Sequence record: OP557969.1
Reading direction: 5' to 3' (one strand)
Length of the DNA stretch: 64,000 nt
Shown: piece by piece, positions 25,091 to 55,348 of the stretch
Position numbering within the stretch: position 1 is the first letter of the stretch
How the letters are laid out: each line of letters begins with the position of its first letter
The notes under the pieces: generated by a model
The model's database searches: none
What the model saw: only the letters and a program-made list of their open reading frames with translations
Told to the model about the DNA's origin: nothing
Position numbers and translations under genes: made by a program

Positions 25091-25326
25091 AAAAAGGAGC
25101 CATATGGCTCCTTTTTTATGTTTTTACGTAAGATGTATAGATCATTATTCAATTTGATTTTGTGAATCATATACATAGAACAAAAACCTCCAACACCTGC
25201 TTTTTCATCTTTTAATTTAATGAAGAAAGTATCATCTCTTAGACTTTCATCTGAATTTTCGATACTATCAATAGAAAAAGGAAGTCTTCCGGTTAATGCA
25301 ATTATGCTACTCTAAGGAAAGTGCAT
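25066..25326 (-). pseudogene. Cryptic or degenerate ORF homologous to the N-terminal domain of the adjacent Ig-repeat protein
   Basis: Open frame 25305-25066: TGRLPFSIDSI and DDTFFIKLKD...GFCSMYMIHKIKLNND align to EGKLPFGIGGI and DNSFMIYVDD...GYATLYMGRIIKLNNG; nearest in-frame ATG (25326) is followed by TAG at 25314. Confidence 0.5.
25091..25117. terminator. Bidirectional terminator between convergent units
   Basis: A-tract, GGAGCC-ATAT-GGCTCC, T-tract. Confidence 0.85.
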
Positions 25327-25343
25327 GATAATTATCATGCACT
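25320..25343. repeat. Perfect 24-bp palindrome, probably terminator of the Ig-repeat gene
   Basis: AGTGCATGATAA|TTATCATGCACT. Confidence 0.75.
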
Positions 25344-25356
25344 ATATTATTAAAAA

Positions 25357-28029
25357 TTAAGCACTGATTGTTACAGTTGCAGTATCTTTTTTATTACCAT
25401 CCACTGTAGTCACTGTAATGATTACAGAACCTTCTTCTAGAGCAGTTACTAATCCATCATCACTAATAGATACTTTAGTAGGTTTATCTGCACTATAAGT
25501 TACTGATTTGTTAGTTGCTTTAGCTGGTAGAACTTCTGGAACTAGTTGAACTGTTTTAGTTCCTGATAGTGAAAGTTCAGTAGTTTTAGGTGTTAAACTA
25601 ACACTGGATACTGGAACTGGAATATTAACGATTACTGATGTTTGACCAGTAACATCACTACCATCAGCGGCAGTAGCGATAATATTTGCAGTACCATTAG
25701 TTAGTGCAGTTACGATACCAGTATTAGCATCTACTTTAGCAATTTCTGGAGCACTGGATGACCAAATTACATTTTTATTGGTTGCATCACTTGGGGTAAT
25801 TGCAGCAGCCATTTGTTTAGTTGCATTCAATGTAGTCAAAGTTTGATCTTTAGGAGTTACATCAATTGCAGTTACTGGCACTGGAATATTAACAGTAATA
25901 ACACCTTGACCTGTTTTACCACTTCCATCAGCAGCAGTTGCGATAATGTTTGCAGAACCGTTAGTTAACGCAGTTACAACACCAGTACTAGCATCTACTT
26001 TCGCTACAGCAGGTTTACTGGAAGACCATGTTACAGATTTATTTGTTGCGTTAGTTGGAAGAACTTCAGCAGCCATTGCTTGAGTTGCGTTAACAGCAGT
26101 CAATGTTTTAGTTGCTGGAGTAACATTAATAGATGCGACTGGAACTGGAATTGCTACAGTTACCGCACATTTTGCAGTTTTTGCTCCATCAGCAGTTGTT
26201 ACTGTGATATCAGCAGTGCCATTTGCTACAGCAGTGATTAAACCAGTTGGACTAACAGTTGCCACTCCATCAGCAGAAGTACTATAAGTTACTGCTTTGT
26301 TGGTAGCATTAGGTGGTAGTACAGTTGGTGTTAGTTGTTGAGTATCACCGACTGAAGTTAATTTAGCACTTGTTGGAGATACTGATACACTTGCAACAGG
26401 AACTGGAATGTTAACAGTTACCACGCAAACTTTAGAAAATCCACCATCAGATGTGGTTGCTGTAATATTTGCAGTACCGTTTGCAACAGCAGTGATTAAA
26501 CCAGTTGGACTTACCGTTGCGACACCCTCAGCAGAAGTAGTGTATGAAATATCTTTACGACGAGCGTTATCTGGAATAACAGATGCAGTTAGTTGTTGAG
26601 TAGCACCTACAGAAGTTAGGGTTGCTGTCAACGGAGTCATATTAATTCCAGTTACTGGGATCGTTACATCAATCACTGATTCAGCAGTTTTAGCACCATC
26701 ATCAGTGGTAACAGTAATAGTTGTAGTACCGTTATCAACCGAAGTTACTAGACCAGTATTACTAACTTTTGCTACGTCTGGATATGAAGAAACATATGAA
26801 ACTGCTTTATTGGATGCAGTTGCAGGAGCAACGGTTGTTTCTAATTGTTTAGTATCACCTAATGTTGAGAATGTATAAGTACTAGGAGTCATTGTGACAC
26901 CAGATACTGGTGTTTTCACTGTGATTGTAGTAGTGTCCGTTTTAGCACCATCTTCGGTTGTAGCTGTAATCACCACTGTGCCGTTAGCCACACCAGTTAC
27001 TAGACCAGAAGTAGGGTTAACAGTTGCTATATCAGGTGTTGCTGAAGACCACGTGACGTTTTTATTAGTTGCATCATCAGGAGATATTGTAGCAGTTAAT
27101 TGTTGAGTACTGCCAACGTTAATTGATGCAGTTTTAGGAGAAACAACAACACCACTAACTGGAGTTGTTACAGTAACAGTACATTTTGAAACAAATGAAC
27201 CATCAACTGTAGTTGCAATTACATCAGTACTGCCATCTGCAATACCAGTTACCATACCAGTTGGACTTACAGTTGCGAAGCGTGGTATACTGGATGACCA
27301 AATAACACTTTTATCACTTGCATCATCGGGTGATACGGTAGCTGTTAGTTGATGAGTTTTACCAACACCAAGAGATAGAGTTGAAGGAGAAACAACAACA
27401 CCACTAACTGGAGTTGTTACAGTAAATGCACAAACATCGGTGAAACCACCATCATGAGTAGTAACTGTTACATTTGCATTACCATTAGCACGGGCAATTG
27501 CTAAACCAGTTTGAGCATCAACTTCAACTATTGTTGGAGCAGAGGAACTATAACTTACTGTTGGATCATTTGCATAATCTGGATTAATTGTAGCTGATAG
27601 TTGTTGTGTGCTACCAACTTTAAGTGCTACTACTTTGGGTGAAATAATAACACCATTAACTGGTGTAGTATAATCACGTTTAACCACACGACCATTGTTC
27701 AATTTAATAATACGACCCATATAAAGAGTAGCATATCCCTTACTAATCCCATCATCTACATAAATCATAAATGAATTGTCTTGAACCATATTAATTGCGT
27801 CTACTGGCTTAACAGTATTTGGAATGTCGATACCACGGGTATCATACCAACACATGGAAACTTTGTAATATATATCACCATTATCATTGATGAGATCATA
27901 CACGTTACTGGAACGTTGACGGTTAATATATAAAGTTTCGGTTAATACCTTACCATCGATTTTAGCGACAGAAACTTTAATACCACCAATACCAAATGGC
28001 AATTTACCTTCACTAGATATTGCTTTCAT
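25357..28029 (-). CDS. Virion-type protein with nine tandem Ig-like (Big_2) domains
   Basis: Nine PV-x-x-V-x-x-x-P ... W/Y-SSS-x-P-x-VA-x-V-x-x-x-G-x-VT repeats after a ~120-aa unique N-domain; late promoter upstream. Confidence 0.9.
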   Translation of the reverse strand: MKAISSEGKLPFGIGGIKVSVAKIDGKVLTETLYINRQRSSNVYDLINDNGDIYYKVSMCWYDTRGIDIPNTVKPVDAINMVQDNSFMIYVDDGISKGYATLYMGRIIKLNNGRVVKRDYTTPVNGVIISPKVVALKVGSTQQLSATINPDYANDPTVSYSSSAPTIVEVDAQTGLAIARANGNANVTVTTHDGGFTDVCAFTVTTPVSGVVVSPSTLSLGVGKTHQLTATVSPDDASDKSVIWSSSIPRFATVSPTGMVTGIADGSTDVIATTVDGSFVSKCTVTVTTPVSGVVVSPKTASINVGSTQQLTATISPDDATNKNVTWSSATPDIATVNPTSGLVTGVANGTVVITATTEDGAKTDTTTITVKTPVSGVTMTPSTYTFSTLGDTKQLETTVAPATASNKAVSYVSSYPDVAKVSNTGLVTSVDNGTTTITVTTDDGAKTAESVIDVTIPVTGINMTPLTATLTSVGATQQLTASVIPDNARRKDISYTTSAEGVATVSPTGLITAVANGTANITATTSDGGFSKVCVVTVNIPVPVASVSVSPTSAKLTSVGDTQQLTPTVLPPNATNKAVTYSTSADGVATVSPTGLITAVANGTADITVTTADGAKTAKCAVTVAIPVPVASINVTPATKTLTAVNATQAMAAEVLPTNATNKSVTWSSSKPAVAKVDASTGVVTALTNGSANIIATAADGSGKTGQGVITVNIPVPVTAIDVTPKDQTLTTLNATKQMAAAITPSDATNKNVIWSSSAPEIAKVDANTGIVTALTNGTANIIATAADGSDVTGQTSVIVNIPVPVSSVSLTPKTTELSLSGTKTVQLVPEVLPAKATNKSVTYSADKPTKVSISDDGLVTALEEGSVIITVTTVDGNKKDTATVTISA

Positions 28030-28066
28030 ATACTTTCCTTTATAAAATTGTATTGTATTGTTATAT

Positions 28067-28074
28067 TATTTATA
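28067..28074 (-). promoter_or_regulatory. T4-type late promoter TATAAATA
   Basis: Exact match on minus strand, 38 nt upstream of the Ig gene. Confidence 0.7.
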
Positions 28075-28265
28075 TTATAACAAAATTATTTTAGTATTAA
28101 AAAGGTGTTCGAATGCTTCTTGAAATCTGGCTTGGACAGGTCAATCTTTGCTTTTAAAATGGAATTGTAAACTGCCTCCTGATATGATATCATAGTTTAA
28201 ATGGTAAATCAATAAACTTAACAAAAAAAACTTGCTACTACAGTCATAATTGTTCAATTTTGTAC

Positions 28266-28294
28266 TTGACATAATTAATCAATTATTGTACTAT
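28266..28294 (+). promoter_or_regulatory. Sigma70-like promoter
   Basis: TTGACA-17 nt-TACTAT. Confidence 0.55.
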
Positions 28295-28329
28295 TGTTAA
28301 TGTTCCTTAACTCAAATCCGAGGTAATCA

Positions 28330-33510: not shown

Positions 33511-33513
33511 TAT

Positions 33514-33547
33514 TGTATGGGACAATATGTCCCATACATGATATAAT
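33514..33547 (+). promoter_or_regulatory. Promoter overlapped by a perfect 11-bp inverted repeat
   Basis: GGGACA-17 nt-TATAAT; TGTATGGGACA-ATA-TGTCCCATACA at 33514-33538. Confidence 0.7.
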
Positions 33548-33579
33548 GCTGTTATCATAATACAGAAGGAGATAGTAAA

Positions 33580-33768
33580 ATGGCTAAACAACCTAAGAAA
33601 AAAGAACCAGTAGCTAAAGTTAAAAAAGCAAAAGTTATTACATCCACAGAACAACGTATGTACGAACAACGTAAGAGTGAAACACTTTCTGGTCTACAAG
33701 CTCTTCGCAAACAAGGAGTCCTAACTCGTGCACAATATCGTAAGTTGGTAACACAAAAAGGTTATTGA
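33580..33768 (+). CDS. Small very basic protein (62 aa)
   Basis: SD AAGGAG; Lys/Arg-rich. Confidence 0.8.
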   Translation: MAKQPKKKEPVAKVKKAKVITSTEQRMYEQRKSETLSGLQALRKQGVLTRAQYRKLVTQKGY

Positions 33769-33775
33769 TACATTT

Positions 33776-33863
33776 GAAGTAATATTATGGGGTTCTTAAT
33801 AAATAACCTTATAAGAATAATAATACTTTTTATTAAATTAAAAAGAACTCCATGTGTTATTTC
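33776..33863 (+). other. Long 3'-UTR RNA hairpin
   Basis: 33776-33797 pairs with 33843-33863: 21 bp including 4 G-U pairs and one bulge. Confidence 0.65.
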
Positions 33864-33870
33864 AGTTTTT

Positions 33871-33897
33871 ATCCCTGTCGGTTGGCAGGGATTTTTT
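33871..33897 (+). terminator. Intrinsic terminator
   Basis: ATCCCTGTC/GGCAGGGAT stem plus TTTTT. Confidence 0.85.
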
Positions 33898-33994
33898 CTA
33901 TCTATGTATTGACAAAAGGATTAATTTATGAGAACATGTATAAAAGGCCGTATGACATTCCATTAGGTTAGTTTTTAACTTAAAGGAGATATAT

Positions 33995-38664: not shown

Positions 38665-38839
38665 AATCTTTAAAAAAGAATACGATGGTGAAAGCCTTTA
38701 TGATATTCAGAGAGATGTTCATGAAGCCTTTGATTCAAAATTTAACCCATTAGCTGAACAAATCCCACAAGATGAATTTGGTTTTCAGGAAGGCACTTTC
38801 ACAGTGACTATTACATGGAGTCCAGATGAGACTAGCTAA
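38654..38839 (+). CDS. Small acidic hypothetical protein
   Basis: ORF track. Confidence 0.7.
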   Translation: MQNEIFKKEYDGESLYDIQRDVHEAFDSKFNPLAEQIPQDEFGFQEGTFTVTITWSPDETS

Positions 38840-38942
38840 ACTTGTCATAGGGTGTAGTGCAATTGCTGCATATATGATTTTTTCACCTCCAACCAATGTA
38901 TTACTGCTAATTTGGGCGGTTGTTATATTAGCAGTACTTTAA
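38826..38942 (+). CDS. Small membrane peptide (38 aa)
   Basis: MRLAKLVIGCSAIAAYMIFSPPTNVLLLIWAVVILAVL; SD GGAG. Confidence 0.55.
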   Translation: MRLAKLVIGCSAIAAYMIFSPPTNVLLLIWAVVILAVL

Positions 38943-38973
38943 AGCACCCCATAGTGGGTGTTTTTCTTTTTTT
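38941..38973 (+). terminator. Intrinsic terminator
   Basis: AAAGCACCC/GGGTGTTTT plus long T tract. Confidence 0.85.
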
Positions 38974-39002
38974 GTACAAATAAAAAGCAATGTCTCAATT
39001 CC

Positions 39003-39044
39003 TTGATATAGGTCAAGAGAAATAACCAGCTATTACGCTATAAT
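39003..39044 (+). promoter_or_regulatory. Putative FNR-dependent class II promoter of the nrdD operon
   Basis: TTGAT-ATAG-GTCAA (9/10 match to TTGAT-N4-ATCAA) ending 22 nt before TATAAT (39039-39044). Confidence 0.6.
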
Positions 39045-39106
39045 GCTTTCTGTTGTTGTTAAATAACTTCACCCCCAGATGATTTCAAAAATACAAGGAG
39101 TGTACT

Positions 39107-52796: not shown

Positions 52797-53414
52797 ATGA
52801 ACAAATATCATGTTTACTATAAGACTAATTTATCACTACTGGAAAAATTAAACCATAAAAGTACTAAGATTAAACACTACACATTAAATGGAATTACTTT
52901 TAAGTATTTTCCACAAAAAGTTCTTACATTTATTAAGAATCCAAAATGCATAGCATGTGGTATTGAAGCAACAGAAGTACGTATTGAACGTACATTTAGT
53001 TCTGACCCAATTTTCGGTAAACCACATTTAAATCTATATGCAGTATGTGGTCTTTATGAAGTTTTAATGACAGTTGACCATAATAATCTAGCATCAAAAG
53101 GTGGTCCAGATTTAGAGTCGAACTTTAATACTATGTGCTCCAGATGCAATCAACTACGTTCAAATAAAACTGAATCAGTTGATGAGTTTCTTGTGAAAGT
53201 TAAAGGTCGTAATCTTCTACAAGAACATATGAATAATTTCTTTAATGTGCAAAATGGACAAAAGAAAAATAGTATTGATAAATCAAAACTACTAGAAGAA
53301 CGTAGATTACAACAAGAATTATGGGAAACTGATCATTTATGGCATGTTCGAGAATTTGGTCGCCATATGAAAGCGTTAAAAAAAGAACAAAAGAAATTGA
53401 ACAATCACAATTAA
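52797..53414 (+). CDS. HNH endonuclease-domain protein
   Basis: CIACG ... TVDH...SKGG...NFNTMCSRCNQLRS. Confidence 0.85.
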   Translation: MNKYHVYYKTNLSLLEKLNHKSTKIKHYTLNGITFKYFPQKVLTFIKNPKCIACGIEATEVRIERTFSSDPIFGKPHLNLYAVCGLYEVLMTVDHNNLASKGGPDLESNFNTMCSRCNQLRSNKTESVDEFLVKVKGRNLLQEHMNNFFNVQNGQKKNSIDKSKLLEERRLQQELWETDHLWHVREFGRHMKALKKEQKKLNNHN

Positions 53415-53825: not shown

Positions 53826-54224
53826 ATGCTTAAAGAATTAGATTTTTCAAACTTAGAAATTATCAGTGCTGTTAAAAACATCTCCGACATGGGAGATGAG
53901 AAATCAGTGCTTGTTACTATTACTTTTGTAAAAGAAGAAGATAGTTATAGTCATTTGACTGGTATTGAAGAACTAATTCATAAAACCAATCTTGAAAATA
54001 ATGGTAAACTCATCAAACTTCAGGCATCCTATATCCAAAAAACATCAAATTTTATAGACATAAATAATATAGTCAAGGTGGTATATAATCATCCTGACCA
54101 CAAATATAGGAATACATCAAGAAATGAAAATATTGCGAAAGATACTAACATCATAGAAGATGTTGACTTTATCAATACTATTTTTGATCGTTGCTCTATT
54201 GATTTGAAAAAAGTATACATGTAA
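53826..54224 (+). CDS. Hypothetical protein
   Basis: ORF track. Confidence 0.75.
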   Translation: MLKELDFSNLEIISAVKNISDMGDEKSVLVTITFVKEEDSYSHLTGIEELIHKTNLENNGKLIKLQASYIQKTSNFIDINNIVKVVYNHPDHKYRNTSRNENIAKDTNIIEDVDFINTIFDRCSIDLKKVYM

Positions 54225-54225
54225 T

Positions 54226-54253
54226 GGGACAATAATTGAACCTGTGATATAAT
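54226..54253 (+). promoter_or_regulatory. Early-type promoter with no long downstream ORF
   Basis: GGGACA-16 nt-TATAAT with TGTGA; same pattern as 6827 and 22240. Confidence 0.7.
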
Positions 54254-54546
54254 GTATATTGTAAAATGACAACGGACATTGTAAAAAATGGACACTGAAA
54301 ACCTAATTCACTTGAAAATGTAAAGGATAGATGAGCTTTACCGTTGTAGCGAACAGCAGAAGAAACCCGTTAGAGTACTGGCATTCAAACAAACACGATG
54401 TAAGACCACGAATCACGGCGACACGGCTGTATAAAGAACTCCGATAAGCATACAGAGAGTTCCTAGATAGATGTATAAGGTTCGCACCTTACCAGATTTG
54501 CTAAGGGAGTTTAAGAATGGCGAACGCAATTTTTACAAGAAAGTTG

Positions 54547-54716
54547 CGTCCAAAATTTGAGAACAAGTACTACTTTGATCGAATAGAGTTAGTACTGAGT
54601 GCTGTTGATGAAAAGACCAGCGACCGTTGCATATGACTGCGATAGAGAGAAACCGAGCAACCCGCTTTCGCTCTCTAAATCTTTGGTACGAGAAAGATCC
54701 GTCCAAAATTTGAGAA
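54547..54716 (+). repeat. Direct repeat CGTCCAAAATTTGAGAA x2 (54547-54563, 54700-54716)
   Basis: Exact 17-mer duplication 153 nt apart, extending imperfectly about 20 nt 5'. Confidence 0.9.
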
Positions 54717-54755
54717 ATTCGCAATTCGATAATATCCGATGCCATCAGCGTCAAG

Positions 54756-54779
54756 AAGAGACTTAATTGTCTCTTTTTT
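54756..54779 (+). terminator. Intrinsic terminator
   Basis: AAGAGAC/GTCTCTT plus TTTT. Confidence 0.75.
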
Positions 54780-54784
54780 ATTAC

Positions 54785-54918
54785 TTTCATTCCCCTGTGG
54801 GGGATGAAATAGTCCTCAACAAATCCCGTCAAGTTATTAAAATACATTATCATTATTCAGAAGTAACAAGTTTACGAAGTAAACGAAGTGACTTCTTGGG
54901 TTGCGAGAGAACGAAGTG
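54785..54918. other. Cluster of DNA hairpins and ACGAAGT repeats (origin-like)
   Basis: TTTCATTCCCC/GGGGGATGAAA; nested AGAAGTAAC..GTTTAC-GAA-GTAAAC..GTGACTTCT; ACGAAGT at 54874, 54883, 54911. Confidence 0.5.
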
Positions 54919-54919
54919 A

Positions 54920-55348
54920 ATGAGTAACACAACGAAAATATATAATAAATCTGAATTAACACAATTGTTATTCAAAGAATATTTTGAGTTTCAGATAAAA
55001 GACGAACATCAATTACCACAACAATACTTGAAAAGAATTAAAGATACGTCAGTAATTACTAAAGAAACTAATTTTTATAATAGTATTTTGGATTTCGTTA
55101 AATCAGTTCATACGACAAGACCTATTGTAGTTTTGTTTTTTGATAAATCTATCCCTTTAGTAGTTCCCGAAAATGTATTTTTTATCTCAGAAACTGATTT
55201 AAATAACCAAAGTACTATAAGTAGATTAAGAAATTGCTTACTTGTAGTATGTGATTCTTATTTGTATAATAACAGAATACTATGGGATAGAAGCAAACGC
55301 AATGCAATTTCGGAAATGAACCCTGAACTTACATTTATTATTAACTAA
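54920..55348 (+). CDS. Hypothetical protein
   Basis: ORF track. Confidence 0.7.
   Translation: MSNTTKIYNKSELTQLLFKEYFEFQIKDEHQLPQQYLKRIKDTSVITKETNFYNSILDFVKSVHTTRPIVVLFFDKSIPLVVPENVFFISETDLNNQSTISRLRNCLLVVCDSYLYNNRILWDRSKRNAISEMNPELTFIIN

Follow-up and report, generated by a model that had tools for sequence, protein, structure and literature searches.

The stretch of DNA analyzed here (the window; 64,000 nt of record OP557969.1, with positions counted from its first letter) comes from Escherichia phage ph0011, a 348-kb RaK2-like jumbo phage of the genus Asteriusvirus. Our subject is an element at window positions 54226-54779, which correspond with 100% identity to positions 116226-116779 of the record. 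The record's annotation is empty between a coding sequence ending at 54224 and another starting at 54920. This interval (54225-54919, 695 nt) is the largest truly intergenic gap of the window and has no open reading frame (ORF) of 70 aa or more on the + strand; the bigger + strand gaps at 25091-28329 are occupied by an 890-aa minus-strand ORF. Its G+C fraction is 0.405-0.42 over 54300-54800, vs 0.26-0.30 in the flanks, and an earlier note on this DNA was right to single it out as G+C-rich and as the only large gap in coding density. The predicted folding energy has a z value of -4.16 relative to shuffled sequence on the + strand, and of -3.05 on the minus strand. The gap very probably contains a gene for a structured non-coding RNA of an undescribed family. 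The same note had proposed a stand-alone, large structured phage RNA, a reading now borne out by covariation, by the lack of conservation of the short ORFs, and by relatives in which the neighboring genes lie on the opposite strand.

The evidence for a selected fold comes from two MAFFT alignments, a first of 15 and a second of 38 distinct members of the family, the larger of which was used for all helix counts given below. Helices were drawn from RNAalifold together with a scan of mutual information with average product correction (MI-APC) over all column pairs, which returned four long-range pairings even though no structure was supplied to it. The structure as written down contains 21 helices with 105 pairs, and five of the helices are pseudoknots or long-range pairings. 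Standard base pairs occupy 89.0% of the cells, compared with 73.0 +/- 0.4% after column shuffling (none of 500 shuffles reached the observed value) and 34-42% when the 3' partner was slid by 1-3 columns. Changes on both sides of a pair are found in 616 cells vs 184 in the shuffles, with 67 of the 105 pairs carrying such changes, and the covariation score is 0.426 (0.159 in shuffles; 0.05-0.09 with slid partners). The pseudoknot helices are 97-100% paired. Compensatory changes thus exceed the controls, which is the generic test of a structured non-coding RNA. About 118 of the 575 window positions, or about a fifth, are invariant across the 38 sequences, chiefly in junctions and loops. The fold contains many G-U pairs, and a hairpin near the 3' end shows one-sided C/U variation opposite an invariant run of G residues; together these are consistent with a + strand RNA only. 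As judged from the alignment, the predicted molecule has two domains joined by the five pseudoknots or long-range pairings.

Coding potential was followed by tracing six frames through the alignment: two with ATG starts, one of 55 codons with a GTG start, and three on the minus strand, including one of 106 aa. No conserved reading frame was found among these ORFs of 37-106 aa on either strand. All are interrupted by stop codons or frameshifts in other genera, and for most of them this is already so within the genus, in orthologues of 79-96% identity. Of the two ATG frames that the earlier note had pointed out within the element, ORF2 (54517-54636) has lost its start and gained three stops in phage 121Q, which is 96% identical, and ORF1 (54331-54447) is frameshifted in JNE01 and stopped in A4. 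The frames are real, but since they are unconserved we set aside that note's caveat of a dual-function RNA or small-peptide mRNA. The lengths of family members differ by non-multiples of three, and whole segments are deleted in some. The RNA core is 84-88% identical to A4 and JNE01, vs 69-79% for the flanking protein genes. As the short ORFs are unconserved, the RNA itself is taken to be the product. Two of the checks that the earlier note had called for, a search of Rfam and a comparison of covariation with codon conservation, came out in favor of its proposal: no family matches, and the pairings are conserved where the short ORFs are not.

The elements of the 5' domain, on the + strand throughout, are as follows.

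54262-54509, + strand: 5' domain of the RNA, defined by covariation, MI-APC and invariant columns
54269-75 / 54341-47, + strand: P1, a pseudoknot of the H-type with P4
54277-90, + strand: P2 hairpin, recognized by eye only
54303-30, + strand: P3 hairpin, with the conserved loop GAAAAYGUA
54335-37 / 54348-50, + strand: P4 (3 bp), closing the loop that bears the 3' strand of P1; 100% paired
54353-57 / 54426-30, + strand: P5, 100% paired
54367-76 / 54412-18, + strand: P6, from the covariation set
54421-23 / 54472-74, + strand: long-range pairing, 97.4% paired
54436-41 / 54457-62, + strand: P7, 94.7% paired, with 6 of 6 pairs covarying
54447-50 / 54499-502, + strand: long-range pairing of the P7 loop, from the covariation set
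54476-81 / 54486-91, + strand: P8, from the covariation set

The invariant single strands of this domain include GAUGAG, GAAACCCG, AUAAA, GAUAGA and UAAGGGAG, the last at 54502-09. The 3' domain is separated from it by a variable insert, and comprises two hairpins, a three-way junction and two long-range pairings, in addition to a second copy of the peripheral module found in the insert.

54510-54565, + strand: variable peripheral insert 1, an ACGCAA/TTGCGT hairpin followed by CCAAAATTTGAG, defined by alignment columns 310-385
54566-54752, + strand: 3' domain of the RNA, defined by covariation and MI-APC
54567-74 / 54587-95, + strand: P9 hairpin, from the covariation set
54578-83 / 54725-30, + strand: long-range pairing of AUCGAA in the P9 loop with UUCGAU; 99.6% paired, 6 of 6 pairs covarying
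54601-04 / 54618-21, + strand: P10 hairpin, from the covariation set
54626-30 / 54657-61, + strand: long-range pairing of GUUGC with GCAAC in the P12 loop; 100% paired
54638-42 / 54719-23, + strand: P11 of the three-way junction, 99.5% paired
54645-49 / 54665-69, + strand: P12 of the three-way junction, 100% paired
54672-75 / 54712-15, + strand: P13 of the three-way junction, holding insert 2
54676-54711, + strand: insert 2 within P13, the second copy of the peripheral module
54738-42 / 54748-52, + strand: last hairpin of the 3' domain, followed by CGUCAAG; covariation seen by eye

The segment GACCGUUG, which contains the GUUGC of 54626-30, is invariant, and in its pairing with GCAAC one pair is altered on both sides in 11 sequences (C-G to U-A in 10 of them and to G-C in one). 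The last hairpin of the domain scores just 41.6% paired because the alignment register shifts there. The two inserts are related by a 30-nt direct repeat, AAAGWTSCGTCCAAAATTTGAGAA, at 54534-54563 and 54687-54716, which represents a duplicated peripheral hairpin module. The position of this module varies: it follows UAAGGGAG in some members, lies within P13 in others, and occupies both places in the window copy. Insert 1 is missing from the Mimasvirus and some Eneladusvirus orthologues and is present in many paralogues, and further sub-hairpins (within P6 and in the P10 loop) likewise come and go across the family.

The pairings found by eye in the earlier note can be compared with this fold, and six of its nine were right or plausible. 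ACAGC/GCTGT, GAACTC/GAGTTC, TAAGGT/ACCTTA and the AGTACTA/TAGTACT hairpin are all supported by covariation, as is ACAACGG/CCGTTGT, which forms a pseudoknot rather than a nested helix; ACGCAA/TTGCGT is plausible, within a variable insert that only part of the family has. The remaining three fail. TAAAG/CTTTA is contradicted by covariation, the first arm of GTTGATG/CATCAGC is a variable loop missing in many members, and in place of AGAGAG/CTCTCT covariation pairs GAGAG (54645-49) with CTTTC (54665-69) and CTCT (54672-75) with AGAG (54712-15). The pseudoknots had been missed.

Downstream of the 3' domain, further elements run into the start of the next annotated gene.

54753-54779, + strand: terminator-like hairpin and T-run, with the core GAGAC (54758-62) / GTCTC (54769-73); 95% paired, 4 of 5 pairs covarying
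54786-54833, + strand: 3' module, a hairpin UCAUUCCCC-UGU-GGGGGAUGA (54787-54807) and then CCUCAACAAAUCCCGUCAAG, defined by invariant columns
54836-54928, + strand: A/U-rich linker and hairpin trailer, with comparable trailers in most paralogues
54876-54890, + strand: trailer hairpin GUUUA-CGAAG-UAAAC, from the sequence
54900-04 / 54924-28, + strand: trailer hairpin GUUGC / GUAAC, with the loop GAACGAAGUGA at 54909-19; it takes in the ATG at 54920, where the next annotated ORF starts

The earlier note had placed the end of the unit at a terminator. A hairpin with a T-run does stand at 54753-54778, but as a 3' limit it fails: it is present in 20 of the 38 members and gapped in 18, and the C-rich/G-rich hairpin beyond it, followed by CCUCAACAAAUCYCGUCAR, is found in all 38, with or without the terminator-like hairpin. 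The hairpin of the 3' module, which occurs once in the window, is 89.7% paired, and eight of its nine pairs vary on one side only (C or U opposite an invariant G), which is consistent with pairing as + strand RNA and not on the other strand. In the trailer, the terminal hairpin covaries (4 of 8 pairs altered on both sides), and the loop GAACGWAGUGA recurs 3' of the RNA in most paralogues and genera. The first 40 nt of the linker are 78% A+T, vs 63% for the extracted regions, and the window trailer is 75-80% identical to A4 and JNE01, compared with 84-88% for the core. On comparative grounds, the RNA consists of a core of approximately 54260-54752 and a conserved 3' extension to at least 54833. 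The trailer (54836-54928) is a probable part of the same RNA, so that conserved structure probably reaches about 54928, and the presence of such structure beyond the terminator-like hairpin means that the entire gap is probably taken up by the functional unit. We regard the hairpin and T-run as a probable leaky terminator or peripheral helix, rather than an obligatory 3' end.

Two copies of CGUCAAG stand at 54749-54755 and 54827-54833. These two CGUCAR sites switch the same letter together, both reading CGUCAA or both CGUCAG, and in one member (locus L071) both read CGACA. Same-letter covariation of this kind is not base pairing, and the sole explanation we offer is that the two sites may have a common partner. 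A candidate helix between GAUG (54803-06) and CGUC (54827-30) shows one compensatory change, in L071, and its fourth pair fails in L069, L070 and L078. We rejected a long-range helix proposed by RNAalifold, in which GGGA (within UAAGGGAG) and GAC would pair with UCCC-GUC (54826-30), as it has no compensatory changes, is broken in RaK2 and XaC1, and is unsupported by MI-APC. A reading of the 3' module as a promoter was also discarded, because the spacing of its candidate boxes is wrong and its conservation is far above what a promoter needs.

The 5' end is predicted from a promoter that resembles others in the window.

54225-54253, + strand: promoter of the RNA, with a TGGGACA box replacing the -35 hexamer, a 16-nt spacer with TG, and TATAAT at 54248-54253; 10 of 12 matches
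10708, 14595, 16812 and 33518, + strand: four other TGRRACR-N14-17-TATAAT promoters, from a pattern scan

The start of the RNA is predicted near 54258-54262, and conservation within the family begins a few bases from position 54260 or so. The window has five occurrences of the pattern TGRRACR-N14-17-TATAAT, always on the + strand, where 0.6 are expected. At least one of the other four precedes a ribosome-binding site and start codon, so that the pattern is indeed one used by protein genes, as had been claimed. Boxes of the TGAAACG/TGGGACA/TGAGACA type, with a -10 hexamer, also stand upstream of family members. The window box matches the "divergent RpoD-like" promoters of phages CBB and GAP32 (a TGAAACG box plus a -10 hexamer), a class that tends in those phages to stand before DNA-synthesis genes (PMC5259590), and on this basis we assign the RNA to that phage promoter type. 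In some paralogues, namely L012 and L013 (Eneladusvirus BF group) and L061 (121Q), a hairpin and T-run such as GGACAGCAAGATAGCTGTCCTTTTTT separates the -10 hexamer from the point at which conservation of the RNA begins; here the terminator of the preceding gene may overlap the promoter region. Elsewhere in the window, 38665-39106 and 33511-33994 are stretches of 440-480 nt with no + strand ORF of 70 aa or more and small ORFs only, and the second of these begins with a TGGGACA promoter.

A blastn search with the element matched 72 phage records at 253 places (approximately 3.5 per record). Identity reaches 96% among other Asteriusviruses and falls to 66-72% elsewhere. The matches include phages of Erwinia, Yersinia, Cronobacter, Pectobacterium, Serratia and Salmonella, along with two listed under Xanthomonas; those in RaK2 and K64-1 extend over a 50-nt core only. 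At all 14 loci inspected, the match lies within a gap of 600-900 nt that is blank or annotated with tiny ORFs, and the flanking genes vary between genera. More members were sought with an exact-pattern scan on two invariant blocks, ACCGTTG...GATA...CAACCCGC. In IMG/VR this returned 53 loci, of which about 41 are true members, and those on full-length contigs are all on RaK2-like contigs of 345-380 kb, with 2-4 dispersed copies each. Twelve GC-rich loci in that set (L018, L020, L023, L026, L028, L030, L035, L048, L054, L059, L063 and L065) were rejected as chance matches, the search pattern alone being common. The same scan gave three loci in 185,579 prokaryotic genomes and eight in a metagenome collection, all of them true members, on contigs of 1.3-349 kb. 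Three true members are on contigs from bacterial assemblies: L070 (Silvania hatchlandensis NZ_JAMGZK010000045.1, 185 kb), L071 (Serratia sp. 2723 NZ_JBNDIN010000009.1, 199 kb) and L069 (an Enterobacteriaceae metagenome-assembled genome, 213 kb). All three have the phage-type promoter, and their contigs are probably jumbo-phage contigs within the bacterial assemblies.

The family forms 13 clusters at 75% identity. It is present in all RaK2-like jumbo phages examined, which belong to Asteriusvirus, Mimasvirus, Eneladusvirus and Alcyoneusvirus or are unclassified relatives. The paralogues are divergent, with 2-4 per genome; 121Q yielded three copies, and the window contains one. Positions 1-40 of the window align approximately 420 nt downstream of the CGTCAA of the 121Q paralogue L061. 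In an all-against-all comparison of flanking ORFs, no protein gene was found to accompany all loci, and loci of the L061 type have the same neighbors in Asteriusvirus, Mimasvirus, Eneladusvirus and RaK2, which indicates that the paralogues are older than these genera. Synteny with 121Q places the predicted end of a second ph0011 paralogue a few hundred bases before the window begins. The annotated genes that flank the RNA in Hallingskeid and 7t3 are, on both sides, encoded on the other strand, and the RNA must there be a unit of its own. A gene for an HNH-domain endonuclease is annotated at 52797-53414, approximately 0.8 kb upstream of the RNA, and the orthologous position of A4 has one too; it is probably unrelated to the RNA, because other genera are without one there. 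These comparisons point to a family that is old, multi-copy and restricted to one jumbo-phage clade, with a fold under strong selection.

Comparison with known RNAs gave no match. Across the whole window, none of the 4227 families of Rfam 15, ROOL, GOLLD, OLE and HEARO among them, reaches its gathering score; at E <= 10, region 54100-54950 has only chance-level matches of at most 18 bits, and at E <= 5 a set of 11 divergent members gave four unrelated matches, none of them on the RNA and none recurrent. ARAGORN found neither transfer RNA (tRNA) nor transfer-messenger RNA (tmRNA) in the window. The earlier note had likewise failed to recognize a tRNA, tmRNA, RNase P RNA or group I/II intron, and each was considered here. 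A tmRNA or tRNA-like element is rejected by the ARAGORN result, by the lack of a conserved frame and by the lack of supported pairing between the 5' and 3' ends. An RNase P RNA would show the conserved regions CR-I to CR-V in their usual order, a P4 pseudoknot between CR-I and CR-V, and a closing P1 helix. The family has no closing P1; as no 5'-proximal strand pairs with the 3' end, it also has no equivalent of P4, and no RNase P model matches the locus at E <= 10 or the 11 members at E <= 5. Motifs reminiscent of RNase P (GAAACCCG, AGAGAGAAACCG and CCUAGAU) occur in a different order, without a P1 or P4 equivalent or a covariance-model match. For group I/II introns no Rfam model matches, and there is no exon context, as the genes on either side are intact and those of one locus are unrelated to those of another. 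A hammerhead or k-turn reading of GAUGAG...CGAA was dropped because the C-U of the hammerhead core is missing. We found no description of the RNA in the literature, including the genome accounts of CBB, fEgEco12 and PA5oct (most subscription journals lay outside the search), and it is not mentioned in a survey of 10,006 viral RNA candidates or in the ROOL/GOLLD cryo-electron microscopy (cryo-EM) work (PMC12286853). With a length of approximately 500-600 nt, a knotted fold conserved throughout the RaK2-like phages examined and no match among described RNA families, this RNA strongly qualifies as a candidate new class of large functional RNAs.

As to what the RNA does, the five long-range pairings, the invariant junctions, the swappable modules and the lack of a cis partner gene lead us to infer a compact particle that acts through its shape. 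The RNA would be made at middle times of infection and act in trans, its invariant junction nucleotides forming a binding site or an active site, and the particle could be a ribozyme, the RNA component of a ribonucleoprotein (RNP) or, in the manner of other ornate phage RNAs, an assembly of RNA alone. The roles suggested in the earlier note (scaffold, sponge or replication primer) are guesses. By itself, this trans-acting particle, our leading reading, is a serious possibility that falls short of being probable; blended into one claim with the structured RNA gene, for which our confidence is high, the whole becomes fairly probable. A further step is more tentative: that these sequences would make up a novel class of large ornate RNAs found in RaK2-like jumbo phages alone, the core of which would be a new natural ribozyme or an RNA-only or RNA-scaffolded building block, with a private loop-strand code for each ancient paralogue. 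The three 121Q copies have different loop-strand pairings (AUCGAA/UUCGAU, AUUGUA/UACAAU and UCAUAU/AUAUGA), and we consider this version possible, though rather doubtful.

Several points weigh against the particle, or against the way in which it was derived. The shuffle control ignores phylogeny (the slid-partner control accounts for it and agrees with the shuffles), and covariation is blind to the difference between intramolecular and intermolecular pairing. In half of the members a good intrinsic terminator precedes the 3' module, which is conserved nonetheless, an arrangement that a single defined transcript fits poorly. The 2-4 paralogues kept at fixed positions would suit a position-dependent, DNA-linked role in cis, and the evidence at hand fits cis as well as trans action. 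No transcript data for any RaK2-like phage were found in the literature searched, so that the ends, abundance and stability of the RNA are all deduced.

The fixed positions would make sense under the main rival, in which each locus is a replication origin and the middle-type promoter yields a folded pre-primer, as in ColE1 RNA II and T4 oriF/oriG; this RNA would stay hybridized to the DNA close to CGUCA and the invariant G-run, beside an A/T-rich stretch, and prime the leading strand. T4-type phages start replication from R-loops made at middle promoters, and the number of loci (2-4 per 350-kb genome, one with the same flanking genes in four genera) fits such a role, as does the distance of approximately 570 nt from the start to the invariant run of G5-6 and CGUCA, after which the next 40 nt are 78% A+T vs 63%. 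A conserved module past a terminator is also tolerable if the role is linked to DNA, and the promoter class precedes DNA-synthesis genes in CBB (PMC5259590). What makes an origin unlikely to us is that five covarying pseudoknots and about 118 invariant positions far exceed the known needs of a primer RNA; moreover, the A/T enrichment is modest, cumulative GC skew passes straight through the locus, and covarying hairpins continue past the supposed transition point. The order of elements in the window (promoter, structured RNA, intrinsic terminator, same-strand genes), along with a trailer hairpin that overlaps the start codon at 54920, could instead be read as a cis-acting leader, either a giant riboswitch or a processive antitermination element such as the HK022 put RNA or EAR, in which the hairpin and T-run would be the regulated terminator. 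HK022, with putL and putR, has several copies of such an element in one genome. This order does not hold across the family, in which 18 of 38 members have no terminator there, the genes beside the RNA run in the opposite direction at loci such as those of Hallingskeid, 7t3 and their relatives, and downstream genes vary among paralogue loci; since the element is also approximately 4-8 times larger than known antitermination RNAs, we regard a riboswitch, leader or antitermination RNA as quite improbable.

The remaining rivals look to the product or to a host target. An invariant AAGGGAG stands 8 nt before the ATG of ORF2, several other members have an ATG after the motif, and some GenBank records annotate small hypothetical proteins here, all of which could suggest a small-protein mRNA or dual-role RNA whose product is one or more of the 38-55-codon frames. 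With ORF1 and ORF2 broken in close relatives as described above, all six frames failing in other genera, lengths not divisible by three, segments deleted, and substitutions that follow base pairs and not codons, this is scarcely credible. A decoy would be a folded RNA, or its CCCC...GGGGGAUGAAA hairpin, that mimics a host RNA (a CRISPR repeat or a tRNA-like structure) and titrates a nuclease or binding protein. RNA anti-CRISPRs made of solitary repeats exist in phages, the joint changes of the CGUCAR sites are those expected of two sites read by one partner, and 54777-54810 (minus strand) has a weak, sub-threshold likeness to a CRISPR repeat (18 bits vs a gathering score of 40, E = 2.8). That match has the wrong orientation and a score no better than chance, the hairpin is near-identical in phages of hosts with different CRISPR types, and the 500-nt invariant core would be left unexplained; a decoy is accordingly highly improbable. 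The rest of the probability belongs to something not among the readings named here.

Whichever role applies, natural RNAs of more than 400 nt with intricate conserved tertiary structure number only a handful, and to our knowledge almost every such RNA with a solved role has proved to be a ribozyme or to form the heart of a major RNP. Those still unsolved, namely GOLLD, ROOL, OLE and raiA, are active research targets, to which this family adds a well-sampled example with 38 distinct sequences. Its hosts are cultivable phages of E. coli, Klebsiella, Salmonella and Erwinia, genetically tractable in laboratory strains; given this and the sampling, function, structure (by cryo-EM) and partners are directly testable. 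The annotation of some 70 deposited jumbo-phage genomes is corrected, where the interval is blank or has spurious small ORFs, and 2-4 loci per genome are marked, at least one of them fixed across genera, which may matter for the phage's replication or gene-expression program.

Among known systems, the family is closest to a few groups of large RNAs. With RNase P RNA, tmRNA and the group I/II introns it has in common its size, a multi-pseudoknot architecture, invariant junctions and peripheral modules that come and go, and its swapped hairpin modules behave as the peripheral elements of large ribozymes do. Unlike these RNAs, it has no end-joining helix, exon context, or covariance-model or ARAGORN match. 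ColE1 RNA II and the T4 oriF/oriG transcripts are similar in being folded RNA, with approximately 550 nt from the promoter to a G-rich or A/T-rich transition, and the T4 origin transcripts also resemble the family in using a middle-type promoter and several sites per genome. These transcripts are, however, not known to have comparable covarying pseudoknots or invariant cores, and the family locus, for which neither an RNase H site nor origin activity is known, is without a change of skew. PA5oct, a distant relative, has four RNAs detected by RNA-seq (ncRNA001-004; 236-619 nt) that are unannotated and highly transcribed (PMC7318152), which indicates that such phages make abundant long non-coding RNAs. 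Its ncRNA001 and ncRNA002 were considered as distant homologues and rejected, the invariant motifs of the family being absent from both.

ROOL and GOLLD, large ornate RNAs of phages and prophages that are themselves Rfam families (PMC12286853), differ from the family in that the latter matches no Rfam model even at E <= 5-10, occurs in jumbo myoviruses of Enterobacterales with several paralogues per genome, and has no tRNA gene in the window. Otherwise the likeness is extensive: both are phage-encoded RNAs of 500-800 nt, with many helices and pseudoknots and strongly conserved unpaired nucleotides, and both are stand-alone genes without a partner protein gene. The multimers of ROOL and GOLLD are held by pairings between loops and strands (PMC12286853), and the family has similar covarying loop-strand pairings (helices 7, 9, 13 and 15).

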